Positions 1-63,390 of a stretch of 64,000 nt of DNA are shown one piece after another. The stretch covers positions 75,849 through 139,848 of the forward strand of contig OZ287698.1 of assembly GCA_965649825.1 (NCBI GenBank), in the 5' to 3' direction. Position 1 is the stretch's first letter, and the number at the start of each line of letters is the position of its first letter. This stretch comes from Penicillus capitatus (Eukaryota; Plantae; Chlorophyta). The notes below the pieces were generated by a model that was not told the origin of the DNA, searched no databases, and saw only the letters and a program-made list of their open reading frames with translations. The position numbers and the translations under genes were made by a program.

Positions 1-7
1 CATATGA

Positions 8-1440: not shown

Positions 1441-1591
1441 GTCGTCTTCTTAACAGTCTGTTGTTGTTCTAAAGAGGCTGTCGGAGAGAGACATCAGCTA
1501 TTGGAGATAAGCGGCCTTTCCTTGCTTGAAAAGCGACGTGCAAGCGAAGAGCGCATCGAATTCGTCGGCGCGGCACTGGACGCGATCGCAC

Positions 1592-45706: not shown

Positions 45707-46765
45707 ATGTCAAGAAAGGACACAGTACTGCTCTTCTTGTTTGTGTTGACCTCTTCAAGCACAGTTTTCGGAGACCGACTGCTTGATATTTCATTGCTGA
45801 CTTGGGGTGAATTGCAAACTCAAGCTGGGTACTTTACCAAAAGTGGTCGATGGAAAGGGGGTCTGCCTAAGAAAGTGCGTAAGGAGGCGGAACTGTTTGG
45901 TTCTTGCGAAGAAAGACAAGTCAATGGCACGTTCTGCCAATCGTGGACGTCTGAGGAAGAGCGCAAGGACAGCTATGGTAAAGGAAACTGCAAGTGTAGC
46001 AAGAACACGGGCGCATACTGCCAAGAATGGACGTGCCTTAGAGAACACACCAAGAGAACGTGCGAAAAGCGATACAAGAAGCGCTGCATTGCCACGCCGA
46101 AGGAAATGCATGTCCAGAGCTGTATCTGTCTCGAAGCCGCTGACAGTGGAGCATACTGCGTGAAGTGGAAGTGCAGTGAAGAGAGAAGACGTCGCCGGTA
46201 TAAGGACGGCGTGTTCACCTGCCGTGCGTCTGATGCATCTATGGAGTTCTGTCATCTCTGGAACGGCGATTTTGAATCGGATAAGGAAGTTGAGTCTATC
46301 GCCTGTGAATGCACTGATAGTGGCGATGGGTACTGTGACTACTGGCAGTGTCAGGCGAGGACACTACTTCGCTGCTCCAAGCACAAAGGAGGCTGGTGTC
46401 GTTTGGGAGTCTCTTTGGGTGTGTTCGGTTCACTCGGATTGCTTTTCCTGTCTGGGGGTATGGCGATTATTTTCGATGACGTTTTAAAGGGGAAGACAGC
46501 AGCGTGGAATCGCGGAAAGATACTGGCCATCTACGTCTGCTTTCTGGTGCTTCCGTGGGGAATTGGAGTAGCAATAGCGGGCGGCATTGACGGAATCGCA
46601 TGGGTGACGCTTATGTGGAGCATCCCATTTCTGATACTGGCATTTGTATTGTTTCAATCAAAGCGGGGTAAGGCTGCGGAACCATCATCGATGTTGGCCC
46701 CTTTGCAAGAGCCGCCTCAGATTCCTGCTTATCTGTTTGATGGGAAGACATATGCAGCATCTTGA
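45707..46765 (+). CDS. Cys-rich surface protein copy A (signal peptide, 20-Cys ectodomain, 3 TM), intronless
   Basis: Open 352-aa frame with hydrophobic N-terminus, WGELQTQAGYFTKSGRWKGGLP, three CxC..YCxxWxC modules, RCSKHKGGWC and three TM helices. Confidence 0.85.
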   Translation: MSRKDTVLLFLFVLTSSSTVFGDRLLDISLLTWGELQTQAGYFTKSGRWKGGLPKKVRKEAELFGSCEERQVNGTFCQSWTSEEERKDSYGKGNCKCSKNTGAYCQEWTCLREHTKRTCEKRYKKRCIATPKEMHVQSCICLEAADSGAYCVKWKCSEERRRRRYKDGVFTCRASDASMEFCHLWNGDFESDKEVESIACECTDSGDGYCDYWQCQARTLLRCSKHKGGWCRLGVSLGVFGSLGLLFLSGGMAIIFDDVLKGKTAAWNRGKILAIYVCFLVLPWGIGVAIAGGIDGIAWVTLMWSIPFLILAFVLFQSKRGKAAEPSSMLAPLQEPPQIPAYLFDGKTYAAS

Positions 46766-46889
46766 GGACTTGATTTTTCGCGTCTTAGCCTAGTCGACCT
46801 ATCTATTCTTTACAACTTTTAACGCGGACTCGGTCACCACTTTTTGCGTTGTTGAATTTCGAGAAGCCTTCAAGTACAACGATCAGTCT

Positions 46890-47950
46890 ACTCGAGACTT
46901 TCCCTATGCAAAATTCGGATAAAGAAGGGGCCGGCGAATGCACCCTGTATTGTCACATTCAACTGCGTCGCTGACTGACAGAGTGCTGTGACTAACCGAC
47001 TCTTAGATTCATAAAGAACAACAAGAGTCGAGTGCTTGATAAATCCGATATCCGCGTGAAATAACATTTTATTGTATCCGCGATGTAGATTGGAGAACAG
47101 TTTCTTACACACGTAGTATCGAAGTTTGTAAGTAAAAAGGAAGTCAGCAATAGATTTATTTCTTAGCTTTCAAGCGCGTTCTTTGGCTATTCAATCTGGA
47201 CTGGATGTGTGGGAACAATGACCGCCTTTGATACGAAGGAAGATACATAAAGAATCCTCTGAGCAAGAAGATAAAATATGTTCTTTCGGAGCATTCATTA
47301 TCTCTCCTTTGGCAAAGAGATGTTCGGATCACCTTTCTGCTTGAGGAATTTAGCGGACCAAGCTCTCATTAATAACTCTATAAACCAGACCATAAACGAT
47401 TCTTGATAATCCAAATGAAACACATGTGCCAGTGCGGTAATCACATTCTATGTCGGAGATCCTCACGTCGCGTTCGAACCGAAAAGGTAACAGACCTTCG
47501 TCTTTGAACGGTGTCAGAAGTTGTCCAAAAATTACAACAAACCATCCATCCATTAACCAAGAACGCGTCATACATGTATCAAAGACAGATCAACCTTTTC
47601 CACGCATCATTGAAGTAACAAAGATTGACACGGGAAATTATGATTTGAACAAAATAGAGAACCTGAGTGAATCGTTTGCCGACAAAGAAGAGAGGGTCGC
47701 CCGTCAGAAGCACTCACACAACATATACGAAGATGGAAACAAACATCCGTGCCTCTGCCAGGAAAGAGGGAGTGTTGTGGCTGCTGTGGGCGATACAGAA
47801 AACAACACCAATCGCCGTTGCTTTACTTGGACTCTCCAGAGTCAGGCTATGGTAACGCCTCCGAAGAAATTAAACATAGCTGTGCAGTCGATGCTGCTCA
47901 GCACTCTCGCATCGTGGCCATTATGAGAAGTGGAAAACTCACCTGGGAGA
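46890..47950 (-). pseudogene. Decayed multi-pass membrane protein gene (family uncertain)
   Basis: Hydrophobic peptide segments broken by stops: GVVFCIAH..MFVSIFVYVV*, VLYFVQIII..YFNDAWKRLICL*, FVVIFGQLLTPFKDEG and STLVVLY..LVTALC. Region is AT-richer than its flanks. Confidence 0.3.
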
Positions 47951-48603
47951 CAAGCACTGAATGGAGGAGGTTACTTGGTTCGGATTGATGGATTCATTTC
48001 TGGTTGTCATCCACATTGCTTCCGGATAACACTGGCCATAGCCTTTTCAGCTGAAGCTCGATAAGCGTGCTACAGACATGCGTGGCTTTCAATATGTTAA
48101 TGGCTACAGAAGACCAGCATCACTCGTGAGTGGCATCCGAACACTAAGAACTCGTCCTAGTGTGGAAAACAGACATTAGTAGACGTGTCGATCCAGTACA
48201 CAGATAACGAGCGCCTAGCCCACGTCATATGCGTCCATGACAAAACAGCTCAAGACGAATGAACTCGGACGTCGGCAATCTTTTCAAATCGAGTTCATGA
48301 GATGAAATTGAAAATCTCCGTGCTGACGTGCGCGATTCAAGATAAGTTCGTATGCCGTGGAGTGAAGCGCACCAGACATAACACTTACATGATATTACGA
48401 GTCTCGGATAATCACACTTTTTTATGTGTGAAGTGTGAAGTTCTCACTCGAGTCTGACAAAGCATAACAAAAGACACAATATGCATGCATATATATGTGC
48501 ACATTCCGAACGTATTGTTGTGTCGACAACGATAAAGAGCCTCTTACGCCAACGTTTGAATAACATAGCGGTTCTTGAGTTGACGGTGCTCTTCTGGTGA
48601 AGA

Positions 48604-49755
48604 ATGTTCCTTTTCCTGATGCATGATTCTCTCGGTGTTCTTACGGAACCTTCACTAAACGAAGCTCGACTGCGCGGTAAAGAGCCGCCAACGCACGTCA
48701 GCTTCGTGACAACTGTCATGGCCTCTATACTCTTCGCAATGATACACGTCCAAGCGAGAGAAGTCACTGGAAGCAGCTGGAGTGAGCTGGAAAAGAGAGG
48801 AGGGTATTACACGGAAGAAGGCACATGGCGCGGGGGATTTCCATGGATGGCTCACAGAGCCGAGAAAACTTTGGAAGTCTGTTCCGATAGGCGTCGTTCA
48901 GCCAATGGCACTTTTTGCCAATCATGGGAGATTGAGAGAGGTCGCGAATGGGCATCCAAAATTGGGTTCTGTCACTGCTCACGTCACATCGACGCATACT
49001 GTGACAGCTGGCGCTGTTCCTTTTCTTCTGAAAACAGCAATGGGTTCTGTCAGTCATTGCGAACACATCACTGCCTTCAGTTGTTGAACGAAGAAAAGGT
49101 CAAAAGCTGTGACTGTATGGAAGCTGCAGAGAATGGGATGCACTGTCAGCGTTGGAGATGTCTCACGAATGACGCTTCTGGTGGCAACCCAGAGGAAGGA
49201 CAATATCACTGCCTCAGTTCAAACTCTTTAAATACGTCCTGTCAGAAATGGGTGGGAGAATGGAACTCAGAGAAGGAAGTGCAATCGGATGTCTGTGAAT
49301 GCGAGCAGGAAGGAGATGGTCATTGCCACGCATACTGGTGCAAGACAAAATCGATGATCCGATGCTCTGAGCAATGGGGAGGATGGTGCCACTTGGAGAT
49401 TTCTATCGGCCTTTACGGGACACTCGGATGTTTCTTTTTGCTCATAGGGATGATGATGCATTGGACACATTGTGCTAATCGTCACGCCAATGTCACACGC
49501 GCAATTGTGGTGTGTTCATTGATCGTCATTCTTGTTATACTTTTGTTCGCTGTGGCCCTTACTGGGGGTGAGTATGGTCTGAGCTGGGTAGCTTTGATGT
49601 GGTTTGTATGTTTTCTTGTCTTGGTGTCGGTCAGAATGCTTTTGAAAGCGCAGCGGGTCAGGAGTTCATCTCTTATGCAGGATCCGAATGCACTACTGCC
49701 GCCTGACGAATACGGAATCCATCCCTACCTCTTCAACGGCAGGTTTTACCCTTAA
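48604..49755 (+). CDS. Cys-rich surface protein copy B, intronless
   Basis: Same 20-Cys pattern, WSELEKRGGYYTEEGTWRGGFP, RCSEQWGGWC, 3 TM and tail HPYLFNGRFYP. Confidence 0.85.
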   Translation: MFLFLMHDSLGVLTEPSLNEARLRGKEPPTHVSFVTTVMASILFAMIHVQAREVTGSSWSELEKRGGYYTEEGTWRGGFPWMAHRAEKTLEVCSDRRRSANGTFCQSWEIERGREWASKIGFCHCSRHIDAYCDSWRCSFSSENSNGFCQSLRTHHCLQLLNEEKVKSCDCMEAAENGMHCQRWRCLTNDASGGNPEEGQYHCLSSNSLNTSCQKWVGEWNSEKEVQSDVCECEQEGDGHCHAYWCKTKSMIRCSEQWGGWCHLEISIGLYGTLGCFFLLIGMMMHWTHCANRHANVTRAIVVCSLIVILVILLFAVALTGGEYGLSWVALMWFVCFLVLVSVRMLLKAQRVRSSSLMQDPNALLPPDEYGIHPYLFNGRFYP

Positions 49756-50162
49756 TTCGAGGCAACCCATCAGATTTCTGTTTTGCTGTTTTTGTCGCCC
49801 TATATAAGTATGTCGAGTAGCGCAGGAGCACGTGAGCGTATGGCCCTGATTTTTGCGGATGAAAACGGAGGGGACCGTAACATTCAATAAGCGTATCATC
49901 TCTGTTTTGCTGTTGTCAGCTGTTTCTTTTTTGCGCGGAAAGACAGTACAGTGAGAATCAATGAAAAAAATCGTACGAACGGGAAGTGGAGCGGAAAGTC
50001 TGACGTGTGAATTGGCATTGCTTAGATGTCTTGTTATATTTAAATTGAAAAGTCAGACGTACGTATTCTCCTCTAAACAAAACGATCACGCCCGTTGCGC
50101 ACACCGTTATCTGCAGATTCGCCCTGACTGTACCGTGATTTCTTCCCCGTTCTCCGCCGAAA

Positions 50163-51443
50163 ATGACACAACGCTCAAGCAGACGAACATTTACCAACAC
50201 AATGGTATTGCCTCAGGGCATCGGCACATGGCTGATGGCGACAGCCATGCTTCTTGGCGTGGCGAATGTCCAAGGCCTCGACATCTCACAGCACGGCTGG
50301 AGTTTTCTAGAGAAGCGAGCAGGATACTACACTGAGGACGGATACTGGAAAGGAGGATTTCCGAAGAGCGAACACAAGAAGGGACAGGTGTTTCACAGCT
50401 GCTCAGAGGTGCACAGCAGCGGCAACTTCTGTCAAAAGTGGAGAAGAGAAGGAGAAAGTGCCGAATCAACCAGACAAGGAACGTGTGACTGCGAGGATCA
50501 TACAGAGTTCTACTGCAAAGAATGGAACTGCATCGGAAAGCAAACGGAGACGCGCTGCCAGCCAGAATACGGAAAGATCTGCCGATTCCCACGAACGTCC
50601 CAAGGCGTCCAAAACTGCACATGTCTGACGCCTTCCGACAACCAGAAATACTGTTCCAGTTGGGCGTGTACGTTGGATATGGTCCGCAAACGTGCTGTAC
50701 AGGGAGAATACTTGTGTCTCGAAGGGAGTTCCCAGACAGAGTACTGTCAGCAGTGGATTGGTCACATCTCATCTGACAGAGAAGAGTTCTCTATCCTTTG
50801 CAAATGTGAAGGAAAGGACGATAAGTATTGCCGATACGGGAACTGTGAGACGAGAACGCTTCTTCGGTGCAATAAACACAAGGGAGGCTGGTGCAATCTG
50901 TGGTTGTCCATCTTCGTTTTTGGCGGCTTTGGACTCGTTTTCTTGGTTTCGGGAATATTGATTGTTTTTTCCGACTCGTTTGTCAATCCCGGCAAAACGT
51001 CGAACCTCATAATGATCCTTCTATTATACATTTGCCTCTTCGTTCTTCCGTGGGGAATTGGAGTGGCGAGTTCGGGAGGTCTTAAAGGCCTTGGCTACGT
51101 GGCAGTGCTCTGGTCGGGTTCTGCCGTTCTAACCGCCGTTTTCCTTCGATGCCAGAAACTCGAGTGGCAGCTACCCGGATGTGGAGATTTTCTTCGGTGG
51201 ATAAAAATACGGCCAAGTACCCTTCCCGGTTACGAGAGAGAAAGAGATACAATGTCACAAGAACAAGCACCATTGTTGGCAGACGAGAGGAGAAAGCCGT
51301 CGGGGCATACAGGACCTGAAACATCGACGGGCACTGAAGAACCGAGTCAAACGTGGACGCAACCCGCTCCAGCAATCCATGAGCGCAATCCGGATACAGG
51401 GGAACGCCTGCCGGATTCAAATTTGCCAAGCATTCATTCTTAA
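50163..51443 (+). CDS. Cys-rich surface protein copy C, intronless (start may be ATG ~50202)
   Basis: Same 20-Cys pattern, WSFLEKRAGYYTEDGYWKGGFP, RCNKHKGGWC, 3 TM and a long polar tail. Confidence 0.85.
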   Translation: MTQRSSRRTFTNTMVLPQGIGTWLMATAMLLGVANVQGLDISQHGWSFLEKRAGYYTEDGYWKGGFPKSEHKKGQVFHSCSEVHSSGNFCQKWRREGESAESTRQGTCDCEDHTEFYCKEWNCIGKQTETRCQPEYGKICRFPRTSQGVQNCTCLTPSDNQKYCSSWACTLDMVRKRAVQGEYLCLEGSSQTEYCQQWIGHISSDREEFSILCKCEGKDDKYCRYGNCETRTLLRCNKHKGGWCNLWLSIFVFGGFGLVFLVSGILIVFSDSFVNPGKTSNLIMILLLYICLFVLPWGIGVASSGGLKGLGYVAVLWSGSAVLTAVFLRCQKLEWQLPGCGDFLRWIKIRPSTLPGYERERDTMSQEQAPLLADERRKPSGHTGPETSTGTEEPSQTWTQPAPAIHERNPDTGERLPDSNLPSIHS

Positions 51444-51889
51444 AGAGATGAATTCTCTGTTCGTGTTACTAGAAGGAGAATTGCCAACACGAGAAGCTGA
51501 GGATTCATGTAAAGCTGGAAAACATCTGCCAATCAGCGACAGATCCGCCTTTGTTGGAGTACCCTTTCTCAGTTTTTAAGAGACATCCCAAGACGTAGAG
51601 AAAAGAAGATTCGAAGCGGTAGAGACAGACCTCGTTGCGTGTTTTAAGTGGTCTTCGTCAGGCACTGGAGGTCGTTCTCTCGTTCAGGATGAGGAGGGTG
51701 GATCGTTAGACATCTCCTGTTTATTAATCCGCCGTAGAAATGTCTAGCAGGAGGAGACTCGTTCGAGAGTCTCTGTGTCTTTCTTCTCTTCAGAGATGGG
51801 ATAGAGAAAATGAAACGTGTGATGTTCGTCGTTTTTTGTTTGATTCGAGGAGTATGCTTCTCCTGTTGCCCTTAAAACAAACGGTCAAT

Positions 51890-52170
51890 TTAGGAACACT
51901 GACTTTTCAATCCTCCGCGCATAATCGCCACGTTGCAGCTCGAATTCGAAGTCTGCTCGCTACACCTGACGGTGCAGTATGCGACAATTCACCGATCCCC
52001 TAAAGAGCACAGCAGTCAGTCACAGTTCCAGACCCTCTTACACATCTCGGACTTGCGTCTGTGAGATGAGCATCGATTTGCCTGTGCGCTACCTCAACTC
52101 ATTGATTCAGAGTTGTCGAAGCATTGACACTGTGATCGGAGATTTGTCGACCGAGATGAATGACAAAGGT
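51890..52170 (+). repeat. Copy 1 of a ~270-nt duplicated block (5' region of decayed copy E)
   Basis: Aligns to ~54910-55175 and includes the identical run tctcggacttgcgtctgtgagatgagcatcgatttgcctgtgcgctacctcaa. Confidence 0.9.
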
Positions 52171-52800
52171 ACGTGTTAATTAATGTCCGACTGAGAGTGT
52201 GGTCAGGAGGGGGTCTGTTCATACGAACCGGCTCTAGAGAATCCAATCTGCACGATGTTTACAGGGAGAAGCGCGCCAACATCAGTCTCTGTCGATCGTA
52301 GCGTAGACGTCGCACGAATAGAGCGTCGACGTCTCCGGCGGAAGGGAGTGCAAGTGTGCGAACAAGAGGCTGGCTGCATTACCTGAGTCGAGAGTGCAGC
52401 GAGAGCAATAGTGGCAGATCGAAGACCTGTGTTCTTTTGTCTTGGAACTGACGCATCCGCAGCAGTAAATTTGTATCGGACAGGGAAGTTGAGTCCATTT
52501 ATCGCCTGCCGAGTGTAACCACAGCGGCGAGGGATGCTGCAGCCACCTACAGTGTCAGCATGCAAGGACGCTGATTCAGTACTCCAAGCATAGAACAAAC
52601 TGGTGTCGTCGGGGAGTCTCTTTGGGTGTCTTCGGCTCGCTCGGATTGCTCTTCTTGTTCGAGGAATGGCGATGATAATTCTCAGAAACGTCTTCAAGGG
52701 GAAGACAGCGGCGTGTTACCGCTGAAGGATCTTGGCCATCTATCTACGTCTGCTAACGAGCACATGAACGATATCGAAGGAATGGTGCTTATCTAATGCC
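52066..52800 (+). pseudogene. Decayed Cys-rich surface protein copy E (closest to copy A)
   Basis: Nucleotide match to copy A (e.g. ggaagttgagtc, ctccaagca, tggtgtcgt, ggagtctctttgggtgt, aaggggaagacagc). TAG at 52299-52301 replaces the Trp of FCxxW. Several frameshifts and an internal deletion. Confidence 0.8.
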
Positions 52801-53254
52801 TCCCTGAAATGGGATGGAGCTTGTGCCCTTCGAGACGTAGACAACCGGTCTTATCATAATCGTCACCGCTGTCATAGAGTCATTGACAATTCCCACTGGG
52901 CCTCAGCTGAGAATCGTGCGTAATCGCCCTGACTCTCATTCTCTCGAGCGTCCTTTTTGCATCAGAACAGTCGTCAAGAGAAAGAAGGTTCTGACGCTGT
53001 GCCGAAAGACACTGGACCCTTGTTCTGTGGAAGCAGTGCAGCATTCTTCTCTCAGTGCACATGGAGCTGTGTGGAATAAAGTCGTGCTGCCTGTCGCACA
53101 ACGATCGCAACCAGGTTTAATGATTCGCCAATGGGCAAATCCCACCCCGACGTCATTCATTTCTGTTCTCACTCGAGGTCAATGACCTCGCCGAATCGCG
53201 AAAGAACGTCCGACGTGTCTCTGAAAAGACACTTCTTATATAGTCGCTGAGTCG

Positions 53255-54628
53255 GTGCGTTTGGTACCGACGACGAACGTACGAACGAACGAGCTGCTTG
53301 ATACGCGGCACACGTGTTTCAGCAACGCAGTGAAGGCAATGACTTTCGTTTCTCTCCATGTTGCGCCAAGTCCTCTGGCGATAAGGAAGAAGACTGCACC
53401 AAACACGTCAACGACGTCCGGACGAGCAGCGGCCGCTCTCGTCACGACAGTTCTCTTGCTCGGCTTGACTACGAATGCACGAGCTGATGACGAGTCTGGC
53501 GGACTCCTCAGTTGGGGACAGCTTCAGAAGGAGGCAGGCTATTTCTCGAAGAGCGGTCTCTGGAGAGGAGGCTTGCCGAAGAAGGAACGCAAGGAGGGAG
53601 ACGTTTGGAGCAACTGCTTAGAGAGACACGGCAATGACAGCTTCTGTCAGAAATGGGAGGAGAAGGGAGATAGTGCACAAGAGTTCAGGAATGGAACCTG
53701 TACCTGCAACGAAGTGAAAGATTCGTACTGCAATCAATGGACGTGTATCAGCGAGGAGAAGGCGAGATATTGTTCAGAGCGAGGCAGAAAGGGCAAGGGA
53801 ATGGCGCCGGTATGTAAGACAGACGTCGAAATGCTTGAGGACTGTTCCTGCCATGAAAGCCTGGGGACAAATACAAGTTCTTATTGTCTGAAGTGGAGAT
53901 GCACCGAGAATGACGGTAACGGTACTTCAAGATCCGGCGATTATTTCTGCCACGAAACAAAGACTGAAAACTCTTCAACTCCTTTCTGCAATCGCTGGTC
54001 TGGGGAATTGACGTCGAATGGTGATGTGGAATCGATCAGTTGCGACTGTACCATTGACGACAATGGGTACTGTGAGAACTGGGAATGTAGTGTAAGGACT
54101 TTGCCTCGGTGTTCAGAGCACAAGGGAGGATGGTGTCATCTGGAACTGTCCATTGCTGTGTTTGGACTGATCGGACTCCTCTTCTTAATCTTTGGAATGG
54201 TCCTTGTTTTTTCCAACCAATGTTCGAGACACACTAGCAGGGACATGCAGCTGAAGATTCTTATAATATACACTCTCTTTCTTGTTCTTCCATGGTTTGC
54301 TGGCGTTGCTCTGTCGGGAGGTGTTATAGGCATTGTAGTGGTGATTGCGATGTGGATCATTCCTTTCATCGTATTGGCATCAGCGATCATTGTACCTCAG
54401 ACTACCGCATGGCAAAATTTTCGTGCTGCAATGGAGAGAATGTTTACGAGCGAAGCTACAAGCGGCAACGGAGAACAAACAGCCTCTCCTTCAGACAGGA
54501 CAGCGCCTTTGATGCACGGTAGACCCGAAGATGATGCGGACAGGGACGACACCCCTCAATCGTCAACACAGGCAAATCCGGCAATCCGTGTACGCGATGA
54601 AGCTACAGGGAAATTGTTGGATCCGTAA
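53255..54628 (+). CDS. Cys-rich surface protein copy D, intronless (start may be ATG ~53339)
   Basis: Same 20-Cys pattern, WGQLQKEAGYFSKSGLWRGGLP, RCSEHKGGWC, 3 TM and several N-x-S/T sequons. Confidence 0.85.
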   Translation: MRLVPTTNVRTNELLDTRHTCFSNAVKAMTFVSLHVAPSPLAIRKKTAPNTSTTSGRAAAALVTTVLLLGLTTNARADDESGGLLSWGQLQKEAGYFSKSGLWRGGLPKKERKEGDVWSNCLERHGNDSFCQKWEEKGDSAQEFRNGTCTCNEVKDSYCNQWTCISEEKARYCSERGRKGKGMAPVCKTDVEMLEDCSCHESLGTNTSSYCLKWRCTENDGNGTSRSGDYFCHETKTENSSTPFCNRWSGELTSNGDVESISCDCTIDDNGYCENWECSVRTLPRCSEHKGGWCHLELSIAVFGLIGLLFLIFGMVLVFSNQCSRHTSRDMQLKILIIYTLFLVLPWFAGVALSGGVIGIVVVIAMWIIPFIVLASAIIVPQTTAWQNFRAAMERMFTSEATSGNGEQTASPSDRTAPLMHGRPEDDADRDDTPQSSTQANPAIRVRDEATGKLLDP

Positions 54629-54909
54629 AGTACTAATCCTTGAAGAGATTGATTCTCTGTTGGCGCTACTGGAATGAGGATCAGCATTACGAGGAACCAA
54701 GGGATATGATGTTCGGACAAAGTCCACCAGTGCAGCAGTCAGTCAGTGCATCAGGAAATCCATCTTGGATCTGAGTTCTTCAAGTTCTCCGGCATGTTTT
54801 ACTTTTCCTAAAAGACATTCAAACCGTAGAAAAGAATGGTTTGTACGACTGAAGGAACTGTAACCGTTTATTTGTCATCTCTCCACCGATCAACAAATAG
54901 TCGATCTAA

Positions 54910-55175
54910 AAACATTGACTTTTCAATCATCCTTAGCGCAATATCGCCGTCACGTTGCCTCTTGAACTTAACTCTGCTCGTTAGATTTGACTCCACAGTA
55001 TGCGATCATTTGCCGCTCCCCTAAAGAGCACAGCAGTTGGTCACATTCCAGTGCCACTAGTGCGTCTCGGACTTGCGTCTGTGAGATGAGCATCGATTTG
55101 CCTGTGCGCTACCTCAAGTCATTGATTCAAAGCTGTCGAAACATTGATGCTGTGATCGGAGATATGTGGACAAAG
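54910..55175 (+). repeat. Copy 2 of the ~270-nt duplicated block (5' region of decayed copy F)
   Basis: Aligns to 51890-52170. Confidence 0.9.
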
Positions 55176-55700
55176 ATCACAAAAATAAACATGAATCCTC
55201 GACTGAGAGCGATCTTTGTAAGAGCGTCACCCCCGGAGAGCTCGTAGGTGCGAGATCTGTGTGATGTTTATCGGGAGAAGAACGCTAACAAGAGTGTCTT
55301 TCGGTTTTGTTACGACCGAAGGCGCATTGCTGGATATCCAGCGATACACAACTGTCAAAATTCTTCCTTCGCTACCAAGATGGACATGGTCTCGTTCAAA
55401 TTTGCACGTCGTCAGTGAAATCAGTCTACTGTCGTACAGCATGCTGATCTGTTGTAGCGTCAGATCCGTGCAACGCATGTTTACCTGAAGTTGTCTTCGT
55501 GACAGTCATGGGCCTCAACGACTACTCCGTCACAGTCGATGGTGGAGTTACTTTCGAAGTGTATGTCTGTTAAATTGCAGAAGTACTGCTCGCTGTTCCC
55601 TTTCTGTGAGAATTCTCTACATTTTATAACTCAGTTGATTGCCTCAAACCACGGACGACTTCTCCCTTCACAGGTCATCTTCGTGGTCAGAAGAGGATTG
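55086..55700 (+). pseudogene. Heavily decayed Cys-rich surface protein copy F
   Basis: Shares the ATG region with copy E. LCDVYREKNANKS parallels E's LHDVYREKRANIS. Remnants such as QKYCS are present, with stops and frameshifts. Confidence 0.55.
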
Positions 55701-55939
55701 TGCTCAGATGTGGCAACAAACTCTGCAGTCATCCAGAAGCTGTTACCAGACTCGGAATGCTCGATTTGACAGGATGCTTTAATCGAATCGCCACGATCTG
55801 CATCTAGTCCAAACGAGAACGTCCAACTCATCTACCTCCACTGCGAACTTTCGTGCGAACTTTCAGAAGAGGTAAGCCACTTCGCCGGTTTCGCCGAACC
55901 ACAGGCGACGACGTTCTGTTGTGCAGACTCGGATTAAAC

Positions 55940-58900
55940 ATGCAAGCCCGTGCTGCAGATGAAGGACCCAGCGGCAGAGGGTCATCCGCGCCGAGAACCG
56001 GCGGCCGAACCGTCACCGAAGACACAGTGGTCACCGCAGAGCGTTACAACCCGAAACTCCTACGCGCTGCAGCGAAGAAGCACAACATCGACAGCACCGA
56101 GTCGCTGGTCGCGGCCTACAACTCGACCACCAATCAAGATGAGCGCGCTGTCCTGCTCGGATGGCTGCGCAAGTACCACGAACGAAAGGCGGACTGTCTC
56201 ACGCCGAAAGCTGTGCTCGAGTATGCGGCGCTGGCCGACGTCGCCCCACGTTCCGCCAGCGAGAAAGATGTTGTGCAGAATTTGATCTACGACCTTTCCT
56301 CGTGCATCTGCGAAGGAGACTTCCTAGCGCCGACTTTTGCCACTGCCCTCCACAGAGCACTCGTGCTCGTCGATCCTTCCGCGCTCGACGCCGTGGAACA
56401 GCTGGTCGTCGTGGCCATGAAGCTCCTGGGCAGCCTCTCTCCAAGACCGAAGCTTACAAGAAAAACCTTTGCGAAGCACGAGGCGACGTTTCTTGCATTG
56501 CATCAGGCCTTCTTCCTGCTTCGCGAAGCCAATCAAGCCCTGATCGACGAAGAAGAGAAGCAGGAGCTGCGAAGAACCGTCGCAGAGAAGGAGAGAACGA
56601 TGAGACTCTCCTGCAAGCACTACCCTGTGAGTTTTCATTTCAAAGCGCTTCGTCAGGCGGCAGAACGTCTCAAAGACGAGGAGGCTGCTTCACGAGTCGC
56701 ACAGGCGAATCAGTATGCCATGTGTGGACTCTGCGCATTCGTGCAGGTCTTTCATTTTCTCAGGAATCTGGCAAGGGGCGACATCGATCCGACGGCCCTC
56801 GAGGACGCGTACGAAACAAATCGAGCAGCCATTAATAACATGGGAGTGGCGAAGCGACCGTGGTTCGACTCGTTTCGAAGCCTGATGGCGAAGAGGCTGG
56901 AAGCGTCGAAGGACGAGACGACGCTCGAGCTTTTTGGAAGCAGCTACCAGGCGTCGATGGAGAACCAGAAAAACGTGAAGGATGGAGAAGATCTGAAGGC
57001 GTTGAGATACGGCATCGTCTGTGAACTGCGCACGCTCGCACTCGAAGGTCCGTCGGAAGACGCCCGAGCCGCGGCCGCGACGAAGCTGGTGGATCTAGCG
57101 ACGCAGCAAGCCATCAGCGAAGGATGGAGCGATGACATCGATATCCTCGTCGCACTCTTGGACGCTGTATGCGAGCTGCATGGAAGAGGCGAGCGCAACG
57201 AGGACATCAGACACGCGTTGCTGGCCATACAGCGATCTTGCACGGGTCATGCCCGAGGAGCATTCTCGGAGTGGTTGGGTGGAGGTAGCGTGGAAGACAA
57301 GCTTGCAGTTCGGAGTCCGCAGAGAGCTGTCGCAGAAAACAACGATCTGTGCATCAAAATCGGCAGAGACGTGGGGTACATCCCTCTTGCCGTCATGAAT
57401 TCGAAGGGAGAAGAGCTGAGGAATAGATATAAGCGCGACGATTTCGCGACGGTATTGGCACGAGAAGCGCATTCGAGTTGACGAGAGGTTCCTGTTCTCT
57501 AGGTGACTTCCTTGTTCGAAGAGGGATCTTCCAAACACGTCAAGGACATGAAGCACCATGTCGTCATCTCCGAGGAAGTTATCGAAGAGCAAGGATTCGG
57601 AGAAGGAAGAGAAGAAGCTGTCCGGGGAGTGGAGGCAACAAAGGCAGAGTCCTCAAACCGCAGAGGGGACCAACCGAAGGAGTACTACGAGAAGAAGACA
57701 AGAGTCACGAAACCCATCGCTCTGGGCGACTTGTTCAGGCCGAGATCTCTCAGACCCGGGGATCCGGAGAGCGAGGTTCGAAGGGTCCTCCTCTACGGGA
57801 ACCCCGGTTCCGGAAAGACGTGCATCACGAAGGCCGTCGCACACAGATGGGCGTCGGGAGAGATGGCACGGGACCTCGACGCCGTTTACGTGGTTCCAGT
57901 GAGAGTTCTCAACCGCGGCGAGTACAACGGACGGAAGTGGTCAAGACTCGAGGGAGCGATATCGCAGATATGCTTCGCCGGAAGCGGGCACGCCTTCGAC
58001 CACGAAGACCTCGTCTCCCAGGTGGAGCACGACCTCGACGACCCGTCGACCATGCTCATGGTCGACGGTTTGGACGAGGCAAATGACCTTGCGATGGAGC
58101 TCCTTTCCACCGTATGGGAGCGCTCGTGCAAGGTGCTGCTTCTCTCTCGTCCGTACAACATGAGAAACGTCGAAACGCGTGTCGACGTTCAAGTGGAGTG
58201 CCTCGGATTCAACGACCAGCAGCTGCGAGAGTACGTAGAAGGCGAGCTGTCGGAGGACGAGGAGGCCCCGCGACTCATCCGTTCTCTTGAGGAATCCGGC
58301 GCCATGTGGGAGATGGCACACGTTCCTGTGACGGCGCACATTCTGTGTTCCTTGTCGAAGGAGCACGGAACGGCGATCGAAGAGCGAGGGAAGAGAGCGA
58401 GCGTCTTTCAGGTGTACAACGACATGGCGAACTACATCTGGAAGAGGTTCAAGACGAAGCCGGCGGCGACAAACGTGAAGAGATCGGATCTCTTCGACGA
58501 CTTGGAGAGAATCGCATTCGAGTCGCTCAAGCGAAGCCTGATCCTCATCCCTCCGCGACTCGTCATGCGATACGCAACGTCGACGGACGCGGCCGGAACG
58601 TTCAAGGAGAGCGGACTGCTTCTGCTCGTGATGGAGGGCCGGGAGTACCAATTCCCCCACCTCACGTTCCAGGAGTACTTCGCCGGAAGACACATCGCGA
58701 AAGGCTTACGAAACTCGGGATCCGCAGAGGACGTCAGAGTGCTCGAGTTCATCCGCGAAGAAAAATACAATCGAAAACATGCTTTAACGCTATCCTTCGC
58801 CATGCACGCGTACGCAGAGGGACGCAGCAAGTCGGCACTGCAAGGGATGCTCTCGGTCGTCGACGAAGACCCCATCGAAGTTCTCGGGATACAGCACTTC

Positions 58901-61465
58901 TTCTTGAGGATGCGAGCTCTCGAGGCGATCATAGAAGAGACAGACGAAGGCGACATGGATGACATACTGAACGACGAACAAGCAGTCGCGCTCGCCGAGA
59001 GTGCTCGCCATCTGCTCGAGCGCACGATCTACGACGTTATAATGCGCGAAATTGTGGTCAAGGAGTTCCAGCAGATGTCCGGCGTCTTGGAAGGATTCCC
59101 TCAAGTTCTCAGAAACACTATTGACGAAGTGAAGAAGATGCTGGCATCCGCGCATAAACTAACATGGAAAGAAATGGCCAAAATCACAGATGTCTCGAAG
59201 CTCGCAAGGCACTCAGTGAAGCATAGCAATGCATTGGTTCAATTCGTGTTACAACGAGCAGAAGAATCCGATGGTTGTTGTGATCCAGAAGAATGCATCA
59301 GAAGGTTAAGTTTCATCGGAAAACAAGTACCTCAGCATGCCGGCAAGGTTTTGGTGATGCTGGCGAAGAAATGCGAGAAGGCAGACGCGTCCGTGCGTAA
59401 AGCAGTGATCAAAGCCATCGTCCATGTCATCTTGACAAGCCCGCAACACGCCGGCGAGATTCTGCCGACGCTCGTAGAGGAGTGCAGCGACGAAAATTGG
59501 AAAGTCCGTGAGACGGCGATTAAAGCTCTTGATAACGTCGCCGCAGCAGCTCCGCAGCACGCCGGCGAGATTCTGCCGACGCTCGTAGAGGAGTGCAGCG
59601 ACGAAAATTGGAAAGTCCGTGAGACGGCGATTAAAGCTCTTGATAACGTCGCCGCAGCAGCTCCGCAGCACGCCGGCGAGTTTCTGACTACACTCGCAAA
59701 GGAGCACGGCGACACAGATTGGAAAGTGCGTCGGGCAGCGGTTGAAGCAATCGGCCGAGTAGTCGCCGCGGTGCCGTGGCGTGCCGGCGAGTTTCTGCTG
59801 ACGCTCTCTAAAAAGCGCGGCGGTGAACGTCCGACCGTGCGTCGGGCGGCAATCAAAGCTATTGAACACGTACTCGCGGCAGCCCCGCAGCACGCCGCCA
59901 AGTTTCTGCCGACGATTGCGAAGGAGTGTGGCGACGAACGCGCAGACGTGCGTGAGACGGCGATCAAAGCCATCGACCACGTCGTCGCAGCGTCCCCGCA
60001 GCACGCCGGCGAGTATCTACCAACGCTTGAGAAGGGATGCGTCGACGAACGCGCGGACGTGCGTGAGACGGCGATCAAAGCCATCGACCACGTCGTCGCA
60101 GCGTCCCCGCAGCACGCCGGCGAGTATCTACCAACGCTTGAGAAGGGATGCGTCGACGAACGCGCGAACGTAGGTGAAGCGGCGATTAAAGCCATCGGTC
60201 ACGTCGTCGCAGCGTCCCCGCAACATGCCGGCGAGTATCTACCGACGCTCGCGACGGGGTTCGACGACAAACGCTTGACCGTTCGTCGAGCAGCGATTGA
60301 AAGCATCGTCCGTGTAGTCGTCGAGGCGCCACAGCACGCCTGCGAGTTTTTGCCGACGTTTGCAAAAGGGTGCGGCGACTTAGACTTCAAAGTGCGCCGG
60401 GCGGCAGTTGAAGCCATTGGTCGCGTTGTCATCGCGTCTCCACAGCACGTCGGCGAAGTTCTGCCGACGCTGGCGAAGTGGTGTGTCGACGAAGACTCGT
60501 ACGTGCGTCGTAGAGCGATGGAGGCCATTGGAAGCGTCGTCGCGGCGGCGCCCCAGCACGCCGGCGAAGTTCTGCCGACGCTGGCGAAGGGGTGTGTCGA
60601 CGAAGACTATGACGTGCGTTCTCGTGCGATGGAGGCCATTGGAAGCGTCGTCGCGGCGGCGCCCCAGCACGCCGGCGAAGTTCTGCCGAGGCTGGCGAAG
60701 GGGTGTGTCGACGAAGACTATGACGTGCCTTCTCGTGCGATGGAGGCCGTCGGCAAAGTGGTCGCGGCGGCGCCCCAGCACGCCGGCGAAGTTCTGCCGA
60801 CGCTGGCGAAGGGGTGTGTCTTCGAAGACTCGGACATGCGTCGTAGAGCGATGGAGGCCATTGGAAGCGTCGTCGCGGCGGCGCCCCAGCACGCCGGCGA
60901 AGTTCTGCCGACGCTGGCGAAAGGGTGTGTCGACGAAAACTCGTACGTGCGTCGTAGAGCGATGGAGGCCATTGGAAGCGTCGTCGCGGCGGCGCCCCAG
61001 CACGCCGGCGAAGTTCTGCCGACGCTGGCGAAAGGGTGTGTCGACGAAAACTCGTACGTGCGTCGTAGAGCGATGGAGGCCGTCGGCAAAGTGGTCGCGG
61101 CGGCGCCCCACCACGCCGGCGAAGTTCTGCCGACGCTGGCGAAGGGGTGTGTCTTCGAAGACTCGGACGTGCGTTGTAGTGCGATGAATGCATTAAATAG
61201 CATGAACCCAGAGAAGATTGTCGTTTCGGCAATGTCAATTCTCCCTAAGCATAGAGTCGGCATTTATTTTTACTTTGTGCGTTACCCGTTTACCTTGGAT
61301 TCTCCTACAAAGCAGAAAACAGTTCCCTTAGTCTTGCATGCGACTTCTTCCCAGAAAATCGGAAAGTGGAGTAAGGACAATGTTGACCTCGTTGTTTCTC
61401 TCTTGAGACGAGAGTTTGATGAGAAGTTTCCCGGATTGTTAGAACATCTTGATAGAAAGGAGTAG
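55940..61465 (+). CDS. NLR-like STAND protein: ~500-aa helical N-domain, NACHT NTPase, 17 HEAT-like repeats and a short C-domain; one intron 57452-57502; ~1824 aa
   Basis: Phase-0 GT..AG intron joins ORF 55853-57481 to ORF 57503-61465. Walker A GNPGSGKT (57797-57820), Walker B LMVDGLDEA, VLLLSRP, WEMAHVPV and YQFPHLTFQEYFAG. Confidence 0.88.
59327..61213 (+). repeat. Intragenic tandem array of 17 x 111-bp (37-aa) HEAT-like repeats
   Basis: Consensus APQHAGE(V/I/Y/F)LPTLAKGCxDExxxVRxxA(I/M)xAIxxVVAA. Units 2-3, 7-8 and 15-16 are nearly or exactly identical at DNA level. Confidence 0.95.
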
Positions 61466-61490
61466 CTCAGAAGCAGACTTCATTCTGTAC

Positions 61491-63390
61491 TTTTTTTTTG
61501 ATTGTGGGCTTTTACAACTCCTTTTTGAGAAGATCAGGAGTGCGTCTGTACATTGAGTGAAAACCAAGAATCCATGTATCCCATGTGTCTTCCTTAAGGA
61601 TGCCAGGCAGCCTGGTTTAGGAGTTGCACCAAATTCTTCCTTCTTGTCTCCACTTGGCACTGATGTCTTCTACGAACTCCGACATCTCTTTCGGAAACTG
61701 GAAGATGCACGCAGTTGAGAGCGTTCCCGGGATCTGTCGCTGGAGCTTCCTTCGTGCTTCATGAAACAAAGGGCATTCCAGCAAGAGGTGATCTCTGTCT
61801 TCTAGAGCCGCTCCACATGAGCATTCCGGGGATTCGGCCAGGGCTCCAAATCTGAATAGGTATTGTTTCGAAGGGAAATGGTTTGCTGCGAACTGCGAGA
61901 GTCTGGAAGCCTGGGGTCTCTCTAGGTATTTCCCAGGGAAGTGCCCTCGTCGGAAATTCGTCAGGTGCGCCGTTAGATGGAAGCTGGTGTTTCGCTGTTT
62001 AATGTCCTTTGCTGCCTCCTGATTCAAAAATTGCGCGATCCGGTGCTTGATCCATGATCTGTCCGGCGGGATTCCCTTTGGACCGCCACTGCAGTCTTCT
62101 GTGATAGTGTTTGACCGTCTCCACTCTGACAGGGCATAGGATAAACCGGGTTTCCATTTCTGAGTTGCCCAGTAGGTCGAATGGCCATCCATGGCCCAGT
62201 CAAGGAGTTCCTGTTGTATCTGGATGCCGGTTTCGGAGACGTTGGTCCAACTTAGAGCTGCTTTCTGGATTCGGTTCGAGTCGACAATTACGACCAGGCT
62301 TTGTCTTCGAATCGGTGCTGTCGAGGTCAACCGCTCTTTTAGGGTGCATAGGCCCTTGTACAGACCCACAAGTGTGGAGATCTCCTCCGACGCCCAGTCA
62401 GGATCCCACCAGCTTTCCCCCTGTCGGTTGTCTCCTTGAAAGAGTCCCCAGCTGGTGCCGAGGCGGTGACGGACTCTATCTTGTTGTGTCGAGACAGACA
62501 GTATCCAGTCTGGGCGTTCAGAGGCCGGTATTGAAGCTGGGCCTGAGAGGAGTTCCAATTGGGAAGGCGATATCGGAGACCACGGATGGATCCGTTGAGG
62601 TGGAATTTCCAGAGGCCTTCGAGGAGTAGCTCTCTGCCAGCGGGACCACGCAATTCTGCGGTAACATTGACCAGCTGACCGTTCAATTCTGGCTTGCAGA
62701 GACATCGGGGTAGCCGGCTTTCTGTGTCTTCTCCTGGCATCAAAGTACAGCGCTTGTTGCACAATTTGTTGGGTGGGCGGGCGGACCCCTGCTAGCGAGT
62801 AGGCTGAGGGGTATGAGGTGGTCCTGAATGTTCCCGCTAGGAGCAAACATGCCTGTCTCATGACTTTCTCCAGATGACCCGCTGTCCGTTCATTGTAAGC
62901 TGCTCTTTGCCACACTTCTGCTCCGAAATATGCAGCTGGTTCAATAACCCTGCTGACCAGCTTCTCAACGGCTTCAGGTAACATGCCCCAGGTCGGGCCT
63001 GTCAATCGTCGAATCCAGTCCAGGCGCGTGCGGACTTTCCCAGCTGCGCTGGCCACTTGCGTGTTCGAAGAGGTCGTCTCATCCAGCCATACTCCAAGGT
63101 ACAGGATGGCGGATTTCTTGTTGAGTTGCTGCCCACGCAGGAATACAGGGAGAGAGTCAGTCCGTCTTCTTCTTTTCACGAATCGGATCTGAAAGCATTT
63201 CTCTGGGGCGAAGATCAGACCTCTGTCTTGGGCCCAGAAGTTCATGCGGTCTAGGGTCTCCTGAAGCATTATTTGCGCTGATCTTTCAGTCGGAGCTGTG
63301 CTCAAAACCAGAATATCATCAGCATAAGCTTGAATGTGCAGGGCCTCTGTGTCTTGAGCCAATTCCAGAATCGGATCCATGCCTATTGTT
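61491..63390 (-). mobile_element. 5'-truncated non-LTR retrotransposon (LINE; I/Tad/R1-type architecture: RT, RNase H-like, CCHC)
   Basis: Intact 587-aa ORF 61617-63380 with AYADD, YLGVWLD, thumb FGAEVW, RNase H-like IVDS and ECSCG..HLLLEC. A9 tail (T9 at 61491-61499 on +). Upstream RT domains absent. No target-site duplication found. Confidence 0.9.

Follow-up and report, generated by a model that had tools for sequence, protein, structure and literature searches.

Tandem genes for cysteine-rich membrane glycoproteins of a widespread, unannotated eukaryotic family in the green alga Penicillus capitatus

A 64,000-nucleotide stretch of Penicillus capitatus DNA (hereafter the window) carries a run of neighbouring genes whose products resemble one another. 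What are these proteins, and what might they do? An earlier note on this DNA had taken them for a lineage-specific, diversifying family of cell-surface proteins, possibly concerned with self/non-self, gamete or microbe recognition. Our overall reading is that they are tandem paralogues of a widespread family of binding or sensing glycoproteins of the cell surface or secretory pathway, and we put its probability at roughly 0.6.

Four paralogues and a decayed copy

The array consists of four intact, single-exon, co-oriented paralogues, g1 to g4, and one decayed copy. Coding regions are taken from the ORF list, and the last entry is context outside the family, assigned with Pfam.

45707..46765, + strand: g1, intact single-exon CDS of 352 aa, the shortest member
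48604..49755, + strand: g2, intact CDS of 383 aa counted from the first ATG
50163..51443, + strand: g3, intact CDS of 426 aa, with an alternative start at 50202
52268..52760 (about), + strand: single decayed, g1-like copy, interrupted by frameshifts and in-frame stops, that extends from repeat C over the stalk to TM1-TM2
53339..54628, + strand: g4, intact CDS with its likely ATG at 53339, in an ORF that opens at 53255
55853..61465, + strand: a 542-aa ORF without a Pfam hit, then an ORF with NACHT and HEAT repeats (NLR-like)

The ORF list and the mutual identity of the proteins (34-43% pairwise; tblastn E 1e-46 to 1e-81) bear out the description of four intact, intronless, co-oriented genes. 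The most divergent paralogue is g2, which has an alternative start at 48718 (MASILF...); a protein on record, P0005, is identical to g1. Two decayed copies had been claimed, but we found one. It matches the g1 type at 69% over 49 aa by tblastn and 73% over 286 nt by blastn, and its core (52493-52672) scores E 5e-11 in an hmmsearch of the six-frame translation; no further family remnants were found in 46766-48603 or 54629-55852. The GC content of the cluster is that of its flanks. The array is best explained as four apparently functional paralogues and one old pseudogene.

A three-repeat ectodomain on a conserved membrane bundle

All four proteins begin with a hydrophobic leader, judged by eye and by hydropathy to be a putative signal peptide; the signal peptides proposed earlier thus stand as a heuristic call. 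In g1, numbered from the Lys codon at 45704, the parts that follow are these:

45803..45868, + strand: cap motif WGELQTQAGYFTKSGRWKGGLP, aa 34-55
45905..46036, + strand: repeat A (C68...C111), C-x9-C-x2-W-x14-CxC-x7-C-x2-W-x-C, four beta strands
46061..46174, + strand: repeat B (C120...C157), a shortened repeat copy with two long strands
46220..46351, + strand: repeat C (C173...C216), membrane-proximal, the best-conserved repeat family-wide
46370..46399, + strand: stalk RCSKHKGGWC, with C19 and C20
46403..46657, + strand: membrane domain with Gly-rich TM1 (aa 234-262), a short basic loop, TM2 (about 271-292), a GG turn (293-297) and TM3 (298-318), from hydropathy and AF2

The 22-residue Gly/aromatic cap, W-x2-L-x3-(A/G)GY(F/Y)-x3-G-x-W(K/R)GG(L/F)P, occurs in g1-g4, which also carry its family-wide form, (A/G)GY(Y/F)-x3-G-x-(Y/W)-x-GG-x-P. 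Between the cap and TM1, each of the four proteins has exactly 20 Cys. Their spacing in g1 and g3 is 9,17,1,7,4,8,7,11,1,9,4,15,9,17,1,7,4,7,7; g2 and g4 deviate from it by 1-6 residues at a few loops. The loops had been said to differ strongly in length, a claim that this almost invariant spacing contradicts. The rest of the earlier outline is present in g1-g4: the cap, the register-matched Cys, the RCxx(H/Q)xGGWC stalk and three CxC modules per protein, here of the form CxC-x7-11-C-x2-W-x-C. Sequons for N-glycosylation are also there, as had been noted, but they are few (1, 3, 1 and 6 per ORF in g1-g4, with five N-x-S/T in the g4 ectodomain), and only the site preceding the second Cys is semi-conserved.

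Spacing tables and hhalign place these Cys in a fixed six-Cys register, C-x7-9-C-x2-W-...-CxC-x7-11-C-x2-W-x-C, so that the ectodomain comprises three tandem repeats of about 50 aa each. Repeat A aligns with repeat C at 97% probability (E 1e-10) and with repeat B at 71% (E 4.6e-6), which supports a probable origin of the ectodomain by internal triplication. Across 79 homologues the Cys columns are 89-100% occupied. The two best-conserved elements other than Cys, family-wide, are the turn between TM2 and TM3 (2.89 bits) and the cap (2.69 bits per column in 41 homologues); apart from their Cys, repeats A and B score lowest (1.2-1.4 bits).

Three TM helices, as reported before, are seen by hydropathy and in AF2 models. 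TM1 is Gly-rich with GxxxG-like motifs, and the cluster members share V289, G293, G294 and W305 of the TM2-GG turn-TM3 unit; in the family alignment G293 is invariant and conservation of the other three is 90% or more. The GG persists in the cluster members, but the Trp preceding it in the turn (IWGG) is replaced by Ala, Ser or Thr. Both the loop following TM1 and the stretch beyond TM3 are basic, consistent with the positive-inside rule, and the topology would then be N-out/C-in. Tails fall into two types: PAI+xRDxxTGxLL is common to g3, g4, a further paralogue g5 and the sister-species proteins o3 and o4, and IPxYxFxGxxY to g1, g2, o1 and o2. The g1 tail ends in ...IPAYLFDGKTYAAS and that of g4 in ...NPAIRVRDEATGKLLDP; the tail of g3 is long, ending in a ...PAIHERNPDTGERL... 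motif.

An AF2 model of g1, built on a 41-sequence alignment (pLDDT 88.9, pTM 0.79), predicts ten long antiparallel strands of 10-15 residues each and helices at 234-262 and 267-323. The second of these, DSSP-continuous in this deep-alignment model, merges TM2 and TM3, so that a chain crossing the membrane only twice, with its C-terminus outside, is a possible alternative. In 79 homologues, Cys are recurrently lost together as the pairs (7,8), (13,14), (3,6), (9,12), (15,18) and (19,20). This pattern suggests that the disulfides pair within the hairpins of each repeat, C1-C2, C3-C6 and, by elimination, C4-C5. C19 and C20 are lost jointly in a distant subfamily and are thus probably bonded to each other as a stalk disulfide. 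Since the strand number is even, the cap probably lies beside the membrane, near the TM2-TM3 turn and the stalk, and the variable hairpin tips would then face away from it. The geometry of the disulfides, the choice between sheet and barrel, and the position of the cap are inferences. The strands and the Cys co-losses together uphold the disulfide-locked beta-hairpin ladder suggested earlier.

Does this architecture correspond to anything known? In g1-g4, no Pfam-A domain, including EGF, TNFR, TSP1, granulin and PSI, rose above its gathering threshold (best E at least 0.019), and across 41 family members (g1-g4 and 37 homologues) no Pfam family reached E <= 0.01. The best hmmsearch match to PDB sequences had E 0.37 and was restricted to TM segments. 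Foldseek against the PDB returned nothing at E <= 1e-3, with TM-scores of 0.09-0.30 and RMSD of 15-27 Å; the only match at probability 0.8 was Omp33 (TM-score 0.30). Against BFVD there was no meaningful match (TM-scores <= 0.31; best hit E 3.5e-4, TM-score 0.16-0.25). The failure to match any named domain is therefore confirmed, and for the PDB and BFVD the statement that the proteins have no known fold holds as well.

An old, constrained and widespread family

The family had been thought lineage-specific. An exhaustive HMMER profile search refutes this: it matched 142 clusters (formed at 50% identity), 66 with E <= 1e-10, and members occur in Undaria pinnatifida (EukProt EP00904_P003204), Ectocarpus fasciculatus (CAM9858132.1, CAM9719478.1), Discosporangium mesarthrocarpum (CAM9835215.1) and, more distantly, the amoebozoan Dermamoeba algensis (EP01097_P008068). 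The brown-algal proteins, on record as 'unnamed protein product' or 'hypothetical protein', match the profile at E 1e-39 to 1e-42. They have the same leader, an AGYYTxxGxYxGGxP cap, 18-20 register-matched Cys, the stalk, a Gly-rich TM1 and a GVxIWGG turn; unlike those of the cluster, their C1 and C2 of repeat A are separated by a long, glycosylated insertion. In the Dermamoeba-type subfamily the stalk pair C19-C20 is missing, and the N-terminal cap is of another kind, one that contains Cys. We conclude that this is an unannotated, phylogenetically widespread family of eukaryotic secretory-pathway membrane glycoproteins, found in green algae, brown algae and Amoebozoa at least, and that the local expansion is limited to the tandem cluster.

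How old is that expansion? A sister species has the same cluster (locus L001) with 1:1 orthologues, o1-o4, and a decayed copy at the syntenic site (9017-9400); protein identities are 53% for o2, 66% for o3 (P0008) and 65% for o4 (P0003). The duplications behind the cluster are old and precede the split between the two species. A second locus (L002) holds g5, a g4 paralogue with 79% protein and about 90% DNA identity.

Between orthologues, pairwise NG86 dN/dS is 0.38-0.40 overall, 0.13 at Cys and their adjacent residues, 0.39 in loops (range 0.31-0.43), 0.43 in the TM region and 0.65 in the cytoplasmic tail, at a dS of 0.5-0.8 that gives low power for a few selected sites. Loops and Cys scaffold thus both stay below 1, and the tail, not the exposed ectodomain loops, evolves fastest. 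Ectodomain modules range from 0.11 to 0.65; the sole exception is repeat C in g4/g5, at 1.2, a value that comes from six substitutions in an apparent gene-conversion tract. For this recent pair the ectodomain as a whole is raised to 0.58. The neighbouring gene ABCF4, used as a control, has dN/dS 0.06 at dS 0.38, and the cluster genes change about 10 times faster than it does (dN 0.22-0.33 versus 0.023). The nearest named counterpart of this ABCF4 is from Caulerpa (74%). Another neighbour, the 542-aa ORF, has a dN/dS similar to that of the cluster genes, 0.35.

The genes evolve fast, yet purifying selection acts on them, and copies are born and lost. Their tail is short and fast-evolving but keeps a conserved short motif at the C-terminus. 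To call the cluster lineage-specific and diversifying was over-reading; it is an expansion by birth and death within a family that is itself old and constrained.

Possible roles and known systems

What, then, might such proteins do? Their architecture fits a membrane protein of the secretory pathway, and from that architecture we assume a surface location rather than an internal compartment. The rigid ectodomain would most likely be a cell-surface module that binds or senses an extracellular ligand, be it a component of the wall or matrix or something else. As there is no catalytic domain, action would be through the conserved membrane bundle and the short tail motifs, the former perhaps in association with partners or with itself, the latter perhaps in trafficking or adaptor binding.

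Perhaps the Cys-rich domain is instead lumenal, in a resident protein of the ER, Golgi or vacuole such as a cargo receptor or a scaffold for polysaccharide assembly? The predicted topology suits lumen and outside equally, and a better-conserved, dispersed member, P0009 (locus L004), lies among housekeeping genes. In g4, g5, o3 and o4 the tail has a D/E-x-x-x-L-L-like end (DEATGKLL, DPDTGELL); such ends resemble acidic dileucine sorting signals, the motifs bound by AP adaptors, and may act as such. However, dileucine motifs also serve the endocytosis of surface receptors, the proteins have no retention signal (KDEL, KKxx), and variable glycosylated distal loops in a lineage-specific expansion are more typical of proteins that face the environment. 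We regard a resident endomembrane role as unlikely.

A diversifying family for self/non-self, gamete or microbe recognition, with its ectodomain loops under positive selection, seems to us slightly less probable again. In its favour are the clustering of several genes in tandem, the loss of one copy to a pseudogene, a frameshift that arose recently in the sister species, the recent segmental duplication, the roughly tenfold rate over ABCF4, the raised ectodomain ratio of g4/g5 and the NACHT-HEAT genes adjoining at two loci. Against it are dN/dS values below 1 overall and in loops, a tail that outpaces those loops, nearly fixed loop lengths, the age and spread of the family and the comparable ratio in the 542-aa ORF. 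Given the low power of the pairwise comparison, these ratios weaken the recognition reading rather than dispose of it.

The neighbouring genes invite a more specific version. The NLR-like ORF has a HEAT array with a 111-nt period and about 15 copies; it and the 542-aa ORF were co-duplicated with g4 at L002, where the duplicate is 90% identical, and their arrangement is conserved in L001. Linkage of family genes to NACHT genes is seen in the window, L001 and L002, and is missing at L004 (P0009) and at L003, which has a g4-like copy. Further along the window lies a reverse-transcriptase ORF (61617-63380). Conceivably, an undescribed ancient eukaryotic receptor fold has in this siphonous-type green alga been expanded beside, and co-duplicated with, NACHT-HEAT genes as a module of surface sensor and intracellular NLR for wound, self/non-self or pathogen recognition; we consider this improbable.

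Could the proteins be small oligomeric ion channels, the Gly-rich three-helix bundles forming a pore gated by the beta-rich ectodomain? The TM bundle and GG turn are conserved above most of the ectodomain, TM1 has its GxxxG-like motifs, and pentameric ligand-gated channels are among the Foldseek PDB hits with the best E-values. Those matches have TM-scores of 0.09-0.21, probabilities of at most 0.3 and RMSD above 17 Å, which amounts to a generic likeness of beta structure plus helices; no residues of the kind that would line a pore, polar or charged, are conserved in the helices, and the search of PDB sequences found no channel of similar sequence. A channel function has a marginally poorer standing with us than the NLR-linked module, and membership of the pentameric ligand-gated channels themselves was rejected on the helix count (three hydrophobic helices, not four) and the TM-scores.

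Recent acquisition from a giant virus or mobile element, which might explain the patchy spread among green algae, brown algae and an amoebozoan, the intronless genes in an intron-rich genome and the reverse transcriptase close by, is very improbable and for the cluster itself already largely refuted: pattern scans of IMG/VR with two subfamily alignments gave no confirmed relative, BFVD matches stay at or below TM-score 0.31, GC is like that of the flanks, and syntenic 1:1 orthologues in the sister species at dS of about 0.5-0.8 make the cluster old and vertically inherited.

Our preferred reading thus remains a binding or sensing glycoprotein of the surface or secretory pathway. By the account in PMC12853178, CRISPR tools now exist for brown algae; these algae also have family members, which should make direct functional testing feasible there. 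Given the confident AF2 model with its long hairpins, the family is well suited to structural work and to being entered as a new domain.

Membrane-anchored proteins with ectodomains of Cys-rich repeats are well known. The repeat found here, its probable 1-2/3-6/4-5 stapling and the attached three-helix bundle have neither a Pfam model nor a solved relative nor a name. Cys-loop channels, through weak Foldseek hits, share a beta-rich extracellular part atop a helical membrane bundle, but they have four helices where these proteins have three, and there is no sequence similarity. Lipocalins and small outer-membrane proteins, likewise weak Foldseek hits, share up-and-down antiparallel strands, again with no sequence similarity. 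Granulin/epithelin and other disulfide-laddered hairpin stacks are alike in their small hairpins, their small hydrophobic core and the rigidity given by regular disulfides. Granulin, however, is defined by four CC doublets; the present family has CxC and C-x4-C pairs, zero CC doublets and, in the AF2 model, much longer strands (10-15 residues), and the granulin Pfam model does not match it. EGF-like, TNFR-type and TSP1 domains also form tandem extracellular six-Cys repeats of about 40-55 aa on membrane receptors, and TSP1 repeats likewise depend on conserved Trp. The Cys spacing here (9,17,1,7,4) is different, and no Cys-rich Pfam repeat matches the 41 members. Disulfides in EGF run 1-3, 2-4, 5-6, whereas the connectivity that we infer for this family is 1-2, 3-6, 4-5.

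The gene cluster and its protein architecture

The cluster is real, and the description of it in the earlier note is largely accurate. Four intact, co-oriented genes (g1-g4) encode paralogues of an unnamed membrane protein family. Their products are 34-43% identical in pairwise comparisons, and with mutual tblastn matches at E 1e-46 to 1e-81, chance likeness is of no concern.

Family genes in the window (coordinates, strand, identity; intact genes from the ORF list)
45707-46765, +, g1 ORF
48604-49755, +, g2 ORF
50163-51443, +, g3 ORF
about 52268-52760, +, decayed g1-like remnant with stops and frameshifts (tblastn, blastn, family HMM)
opening at 53255, likely ATG at 53339, ending at 54628, +, g4 ORF

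Two decayed copies had been claimed, and only this one was recovered. A second was not found anywhere in the window by tblastn (E<=5, word size 2), by blastn or by searching the six-frame translation with the family HMM. The remaining intergenic stretches, including 54629-55852, which had been counted as part of the cluster, hold no family-related sequence.

Each product consists, in order, of a hydrophobic N-terminal leader, the cap W-x2-L-x3-(A/G)GY(F/Y)-x3-G-x-W(K/R)GG(L/F)P, an ectodomain with exactly 20 Cys up to and including the RCxx(H/Q)xGGWC stalk, three hydrophobic segments and a tail of 35-110 residues. Cap, stalk motif and Cys register are thus present in all four, as originally reported. 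The 20 Cys form three tandem six-Cys repeats (A, B and C) and a two-Cys stalk. In profile-profile comparisons of repeats taken from a 41-sequence family alignment, A matched C with 97% probability (E 1e-10), A matched B with 71% and B matched C with 38%; repeat B is a shortened copy of the unit. The Cys spacing is 9,17,1,7,4 / 8 / 7,11,1,9,4 / 15 / 9,17,1,7,4 / 7,7 in g1 and g3, and g2 and g4 depart from it in a few loops, by 1-6 residues. Hence, the inter-Cys loops vary in sequence, as had been noted, but barely in length, where strong differences had been claimed. N-glycosylation sequons do occur; they are scarce and mostly unconserved.

An AlphaFold2 model built with 7 sequences reached a pLDDT of only 49.5 and was unusable, and the Foldseek result obtained from it was discarded as meaningless. 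With 41 sequences, the pLDDT was 88.9 and the pTM 0.79, with ectodomain blocks at 95-98. In this model the cap is short and helical, and it is followed by ten antiparallel strands, each 10-15 residues long, in up-and-down order (four, two and four in repeats A, B and C) and by helices at 234-262 and 267-323. Across 79 homologues spanning the whole ectodomain, Cys residues were lost in recurrent pairs: (7,8), (13,14), (3,6), (9,12), (15,18) and (19,20). Numbered within each repeat, this co-loss implies predicted disulfides C1-C2, C3-C6 and, by elimination, C4-C5, plus one in the stalk. Given this pattern and the modelled strands, the phrase "disulfide-locked beta-hairpin ladder" used in the earlier note is a good description.

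Basic residues mark the loop that follows TM1 and the stretch behind TM3. Together with hydropathy and an invariant GG between TM2 and TM3, they favour a three-pass, N-out/C-in topology. The three hydrophobic segments behind the claim of three TM helices are there; the model runs through TM2-TM3 without a DSSP break, so the number of passes is one that we infer. Because the strand number is even, strand 1 starts at that end of the ectodomain where strand 10 finishes, which would probably place the cap next to the membrane, by the stalk and the TM2-TM3 turn, with the variable hairpin tips pointing outward. Trp at position 50 of the cap goes with a small residue at position 292 of the turn (the window's clade), and Tyr at 50 goes with Trp at 292 (the core family). 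This covariation is real and is a hint that the cap lies near the turn; it may also reflect a single evolutionary event.

Constraint, turnover and breadth of the family

We compared the cluster, from a species represented by a long-read metagenome (ENA ERZ25074695, a 1.02-Mb contig), with a sister-species assembly (ENA ERZ26696514). The syntenic sister locus, L001, has the same cluster, order and flanks, with 1:1 orthologues (o1-o4) and a decayed copy at the matching place; the pseudogene is old and common to both species. The housekeeping gene ABCF4 lies about 45 kb upstream in both. The duplications are therefore older than the species split. Orthologue protein identity is 70-75% for o1, 53% for o2, 66% for o3 and 65% for o4. 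The o1 gene (L001 2337-3448) carries a single 1-nt deletion (CGATAT-GGAAGCG) outside any homopolymer, with the downstream frame open and conserved; either the gene became a pseudogene very recently or the assembly is wrong here.

Orthologue dN/dS by protein region (Nei-Gojobori)
Residues next to Cys: 0.13
Cap: 0.21
Ectodomain loops: 0.39
TM region: 0.43
Tail: 0.65

Overall, orthologue dN/dS was 0.38-0.40 by the same method, and no six-Cys repeat exceeded 0.65. The values were 0.35 for the neighbouring ORF542 and 0.06, at a dS of 0.38, for an ABCF4 exon. Hence, these proteins change about ten times faster than their housekeeping neighbour while purifying selection persists. (The best named matches of the window's ABCF4 exon were Caulerpa lentillifera at 74%, Scenedesmus and Bryopsis at 71% each, Chlamydomonas at 67% and Ostreobium at 63%; they mark the host as a chlorophyte, probably an ulvophyte close to the siphonous Bryopsidales.) The loops had been proposed to diversify, yet the fastest region is the tail and not the exposed loops. 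On the available sequence tests, these data show a cluster under constraint rather than diversification.

Gene turnover in the cluster is nevertheless real. A second locus of the window's species, L002, holds a further copy:

L002 9767-11089, +, g5, fifth intact family copy, same contig as the window

The g5 product is 79% identical to that of g4 (about 90% at the DNA level) and carries an insertion of 14 residues within repeat B. The pair has a dN/dS of 0.51. Its dS is 0.24-0.28 in repeats A and B but only 0.03 in repeat C (window about 53950-54140), a pattern suggestive of a tract of gene conversion there.

Word-seeded homology searches had returned seven close relatives only, wrongly implying a tiny family. 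This was corrected by an exhaustive HMMER search in which the family profile was run against 1.84 billion cluster representatives: 142 clusters matched at E<=1e-3, 66 at E<=1e-10 and 31 at E<=1e-30. Most come from metagenomes or SRA assemblies. The named relatives, which all share the architecture, are an "unnamed protein product" each from the brown algae Ectocarpus fasciculatus and Discosporangium mesarthrocarpum, a gene model on a chromosome-scale scaffold of Undaria pinnatifida and a Dermamoeba algensis (Amoebozoa) transcript. We conclude that the family, first supposed to be lineage-specific, is in fact old and widespread. Outside the Cys, its conservation peaks at the TM2-TM3 turn (2.89 bits; GVxIWGG in most members) and in the cap (2.69 bits per column), and is lowest in repeats A and B (1.2-1.4 bits at their non-Cys positions). 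The only domain fusion seen was in P0084, a distant metagenomic homologue of 871 aa with a pair of Laminin_G_3 (ConA-like) domains downstream of the membrane region; apart from that C-terminal pair, Pfam gave only sub-threshold matches in the long, distant members and did not inform on the core.

Genes around the cluster

Neighbouring features in the window (coordinates, strand, identity)
9760-40573, +, multi-exon housekeeping genes in one orientation, including ABCF4, JmjC/cupin-8, ClpP, DUF789, eRF1-like domain, phytochelatin-synthase-like fragment
55853-61465, +, directly 3' of g4: ORF542 (542 aa, no Pfam match), then, in another frame, a 1320-aa ORF with NACHT and many HEAT repeats (NLR-like)
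59440-61186, HEAT array of the NACHT gene: 111-nt (37-aa) tandem repeat, about 12-15 units, 79-84% matches
61617-63380, -, 587-aa reverse transcriptase (RVT_1) ORF, a retroelement right after the NLR-like gene

Between about 9.7 and 61.5 kb, every large ORF fragment is on the + strand. The layout of ORF542 followed by the NACHT-HEAT ORF is unchanged in the sister species, so it probably represents an intron or two genes, not an error. Internal homogenisation like that of the HEAT array occurs in fungal and bacterial NLRs with highly variable repeat domains. On the strand opposite the HEAT array in the sister-species NACHT gene, near-perfect repeats (RRRTPSPASAEPRRRGPAPL...) make up a 706-aa ORF (L001 19146-21266, -), which is almost certainly a repeat artefact and not a gene.

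The block of g4, ORF542 and NACHT gene has been duplicated to L002, which is about 90% identical to window 53038-61200. There g5 is flanked by two further NACHT-HEAT genes (1-4163, -; 20993-21089, -), and the NLR part has the opposite orientation to g5. The record coordinates of L002 overlap the last 3 kb of the window (60911-64000), yet no identical sequence is shared there.

Linkage to NLR-like genes, seen in the window, L001 and L002, does not hold at every locus: P0009, a dispersed and better-conserved family member (locus L004), sits amid housekeeping genes, and the ORF downstream of a g4-like copy on another contig, L003, is unrelated to ORF542. We regard the adjacency of NLR-like and family genes as unproven. 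L003 is an 11-kb contig at 2x coverage from the same sample, and its g4-like copy is 58% identical in protein and 89% in DNA (first 650 nt). Long ORFs adjoin this copy, and one of them encodes a solute-binding protein of the bacterial SBP_bac_5 type; L003 may be chimeric, or it may belong to a third related alga.

Proposed role and relation to known proteins

The g1-g4 proteins combine secretory-pathway features, a rigid repeat-built ectodomain and a conserved compact membrane bundle, and no catalytic or known signalling domain was found in them. Within the otherwise fast tail, short C-terminal motifs are conserved: PAI+xRDxxTGxLL in the g3/g4 clade and IPxYxFxGxxY in g1/g2. We propose that the protein is a binding or sensing module, at the surface or at least lumen-facing. 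It would engage an extracellular ligand, or a component of the wall or matrix, with the variable tips of its hairpins; output would depend on association of the membrane bundle and also on trafficking or adaptor proteins recruited by the tail motifs. We put the whole statement, such a membrane protein with such a role, at a probability of about 0.6. What the protein is seems near certain, while a putative binding module at the surface has about even odds.

Perhaps the secretory-pathway features instead mark a resident of the endomembrane system? We consider this unlikely, and a diversifying recognition family slightly more so: gene turnover fits the latter, and the constraint on the loops argues against it. 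That the bundle forms an oligomeric channel is improbable; Cys-loop channels and up-and-down barrels were the top Foldseek matches in the PDB, but the resemblance is generic. A viral origin is very improbable, as IMG/VR scans with two subfamily alignments gave no viral relative and Foldseek of the 41-sequence model against BFVD gave nothing above a TM-score of 0.31.

The binding or sensing module we prefer has no named counterpart, in line with the earlier failure to match a named domain. No Pfam model matched any of the 41 family members, a PDB sequence profile search gave TM-segment noise only, and Foldseek of the 41-sequence model against the PDB gave no match at E<=1e-3, with TM-scores <=0.30. 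A full-text literature search found no description of the family. PKN, a brown-algal fertilisation factor that we also checked, is an unrelated beta-propeller type I protein. Within the scope of PDB and Pfam, the family is truly unannotated and without a solved relative. It is nonetheless a Cys-rich repeat membrane glycoprotein, a kind of protein already known. Its ectodomain is alike in principle to granulin-type hairpin stacks and to six-Cys receptor repeats (EGF, TNFR, TSP1), but differs from both in Cys pattern, inferred connectivity and strand length.
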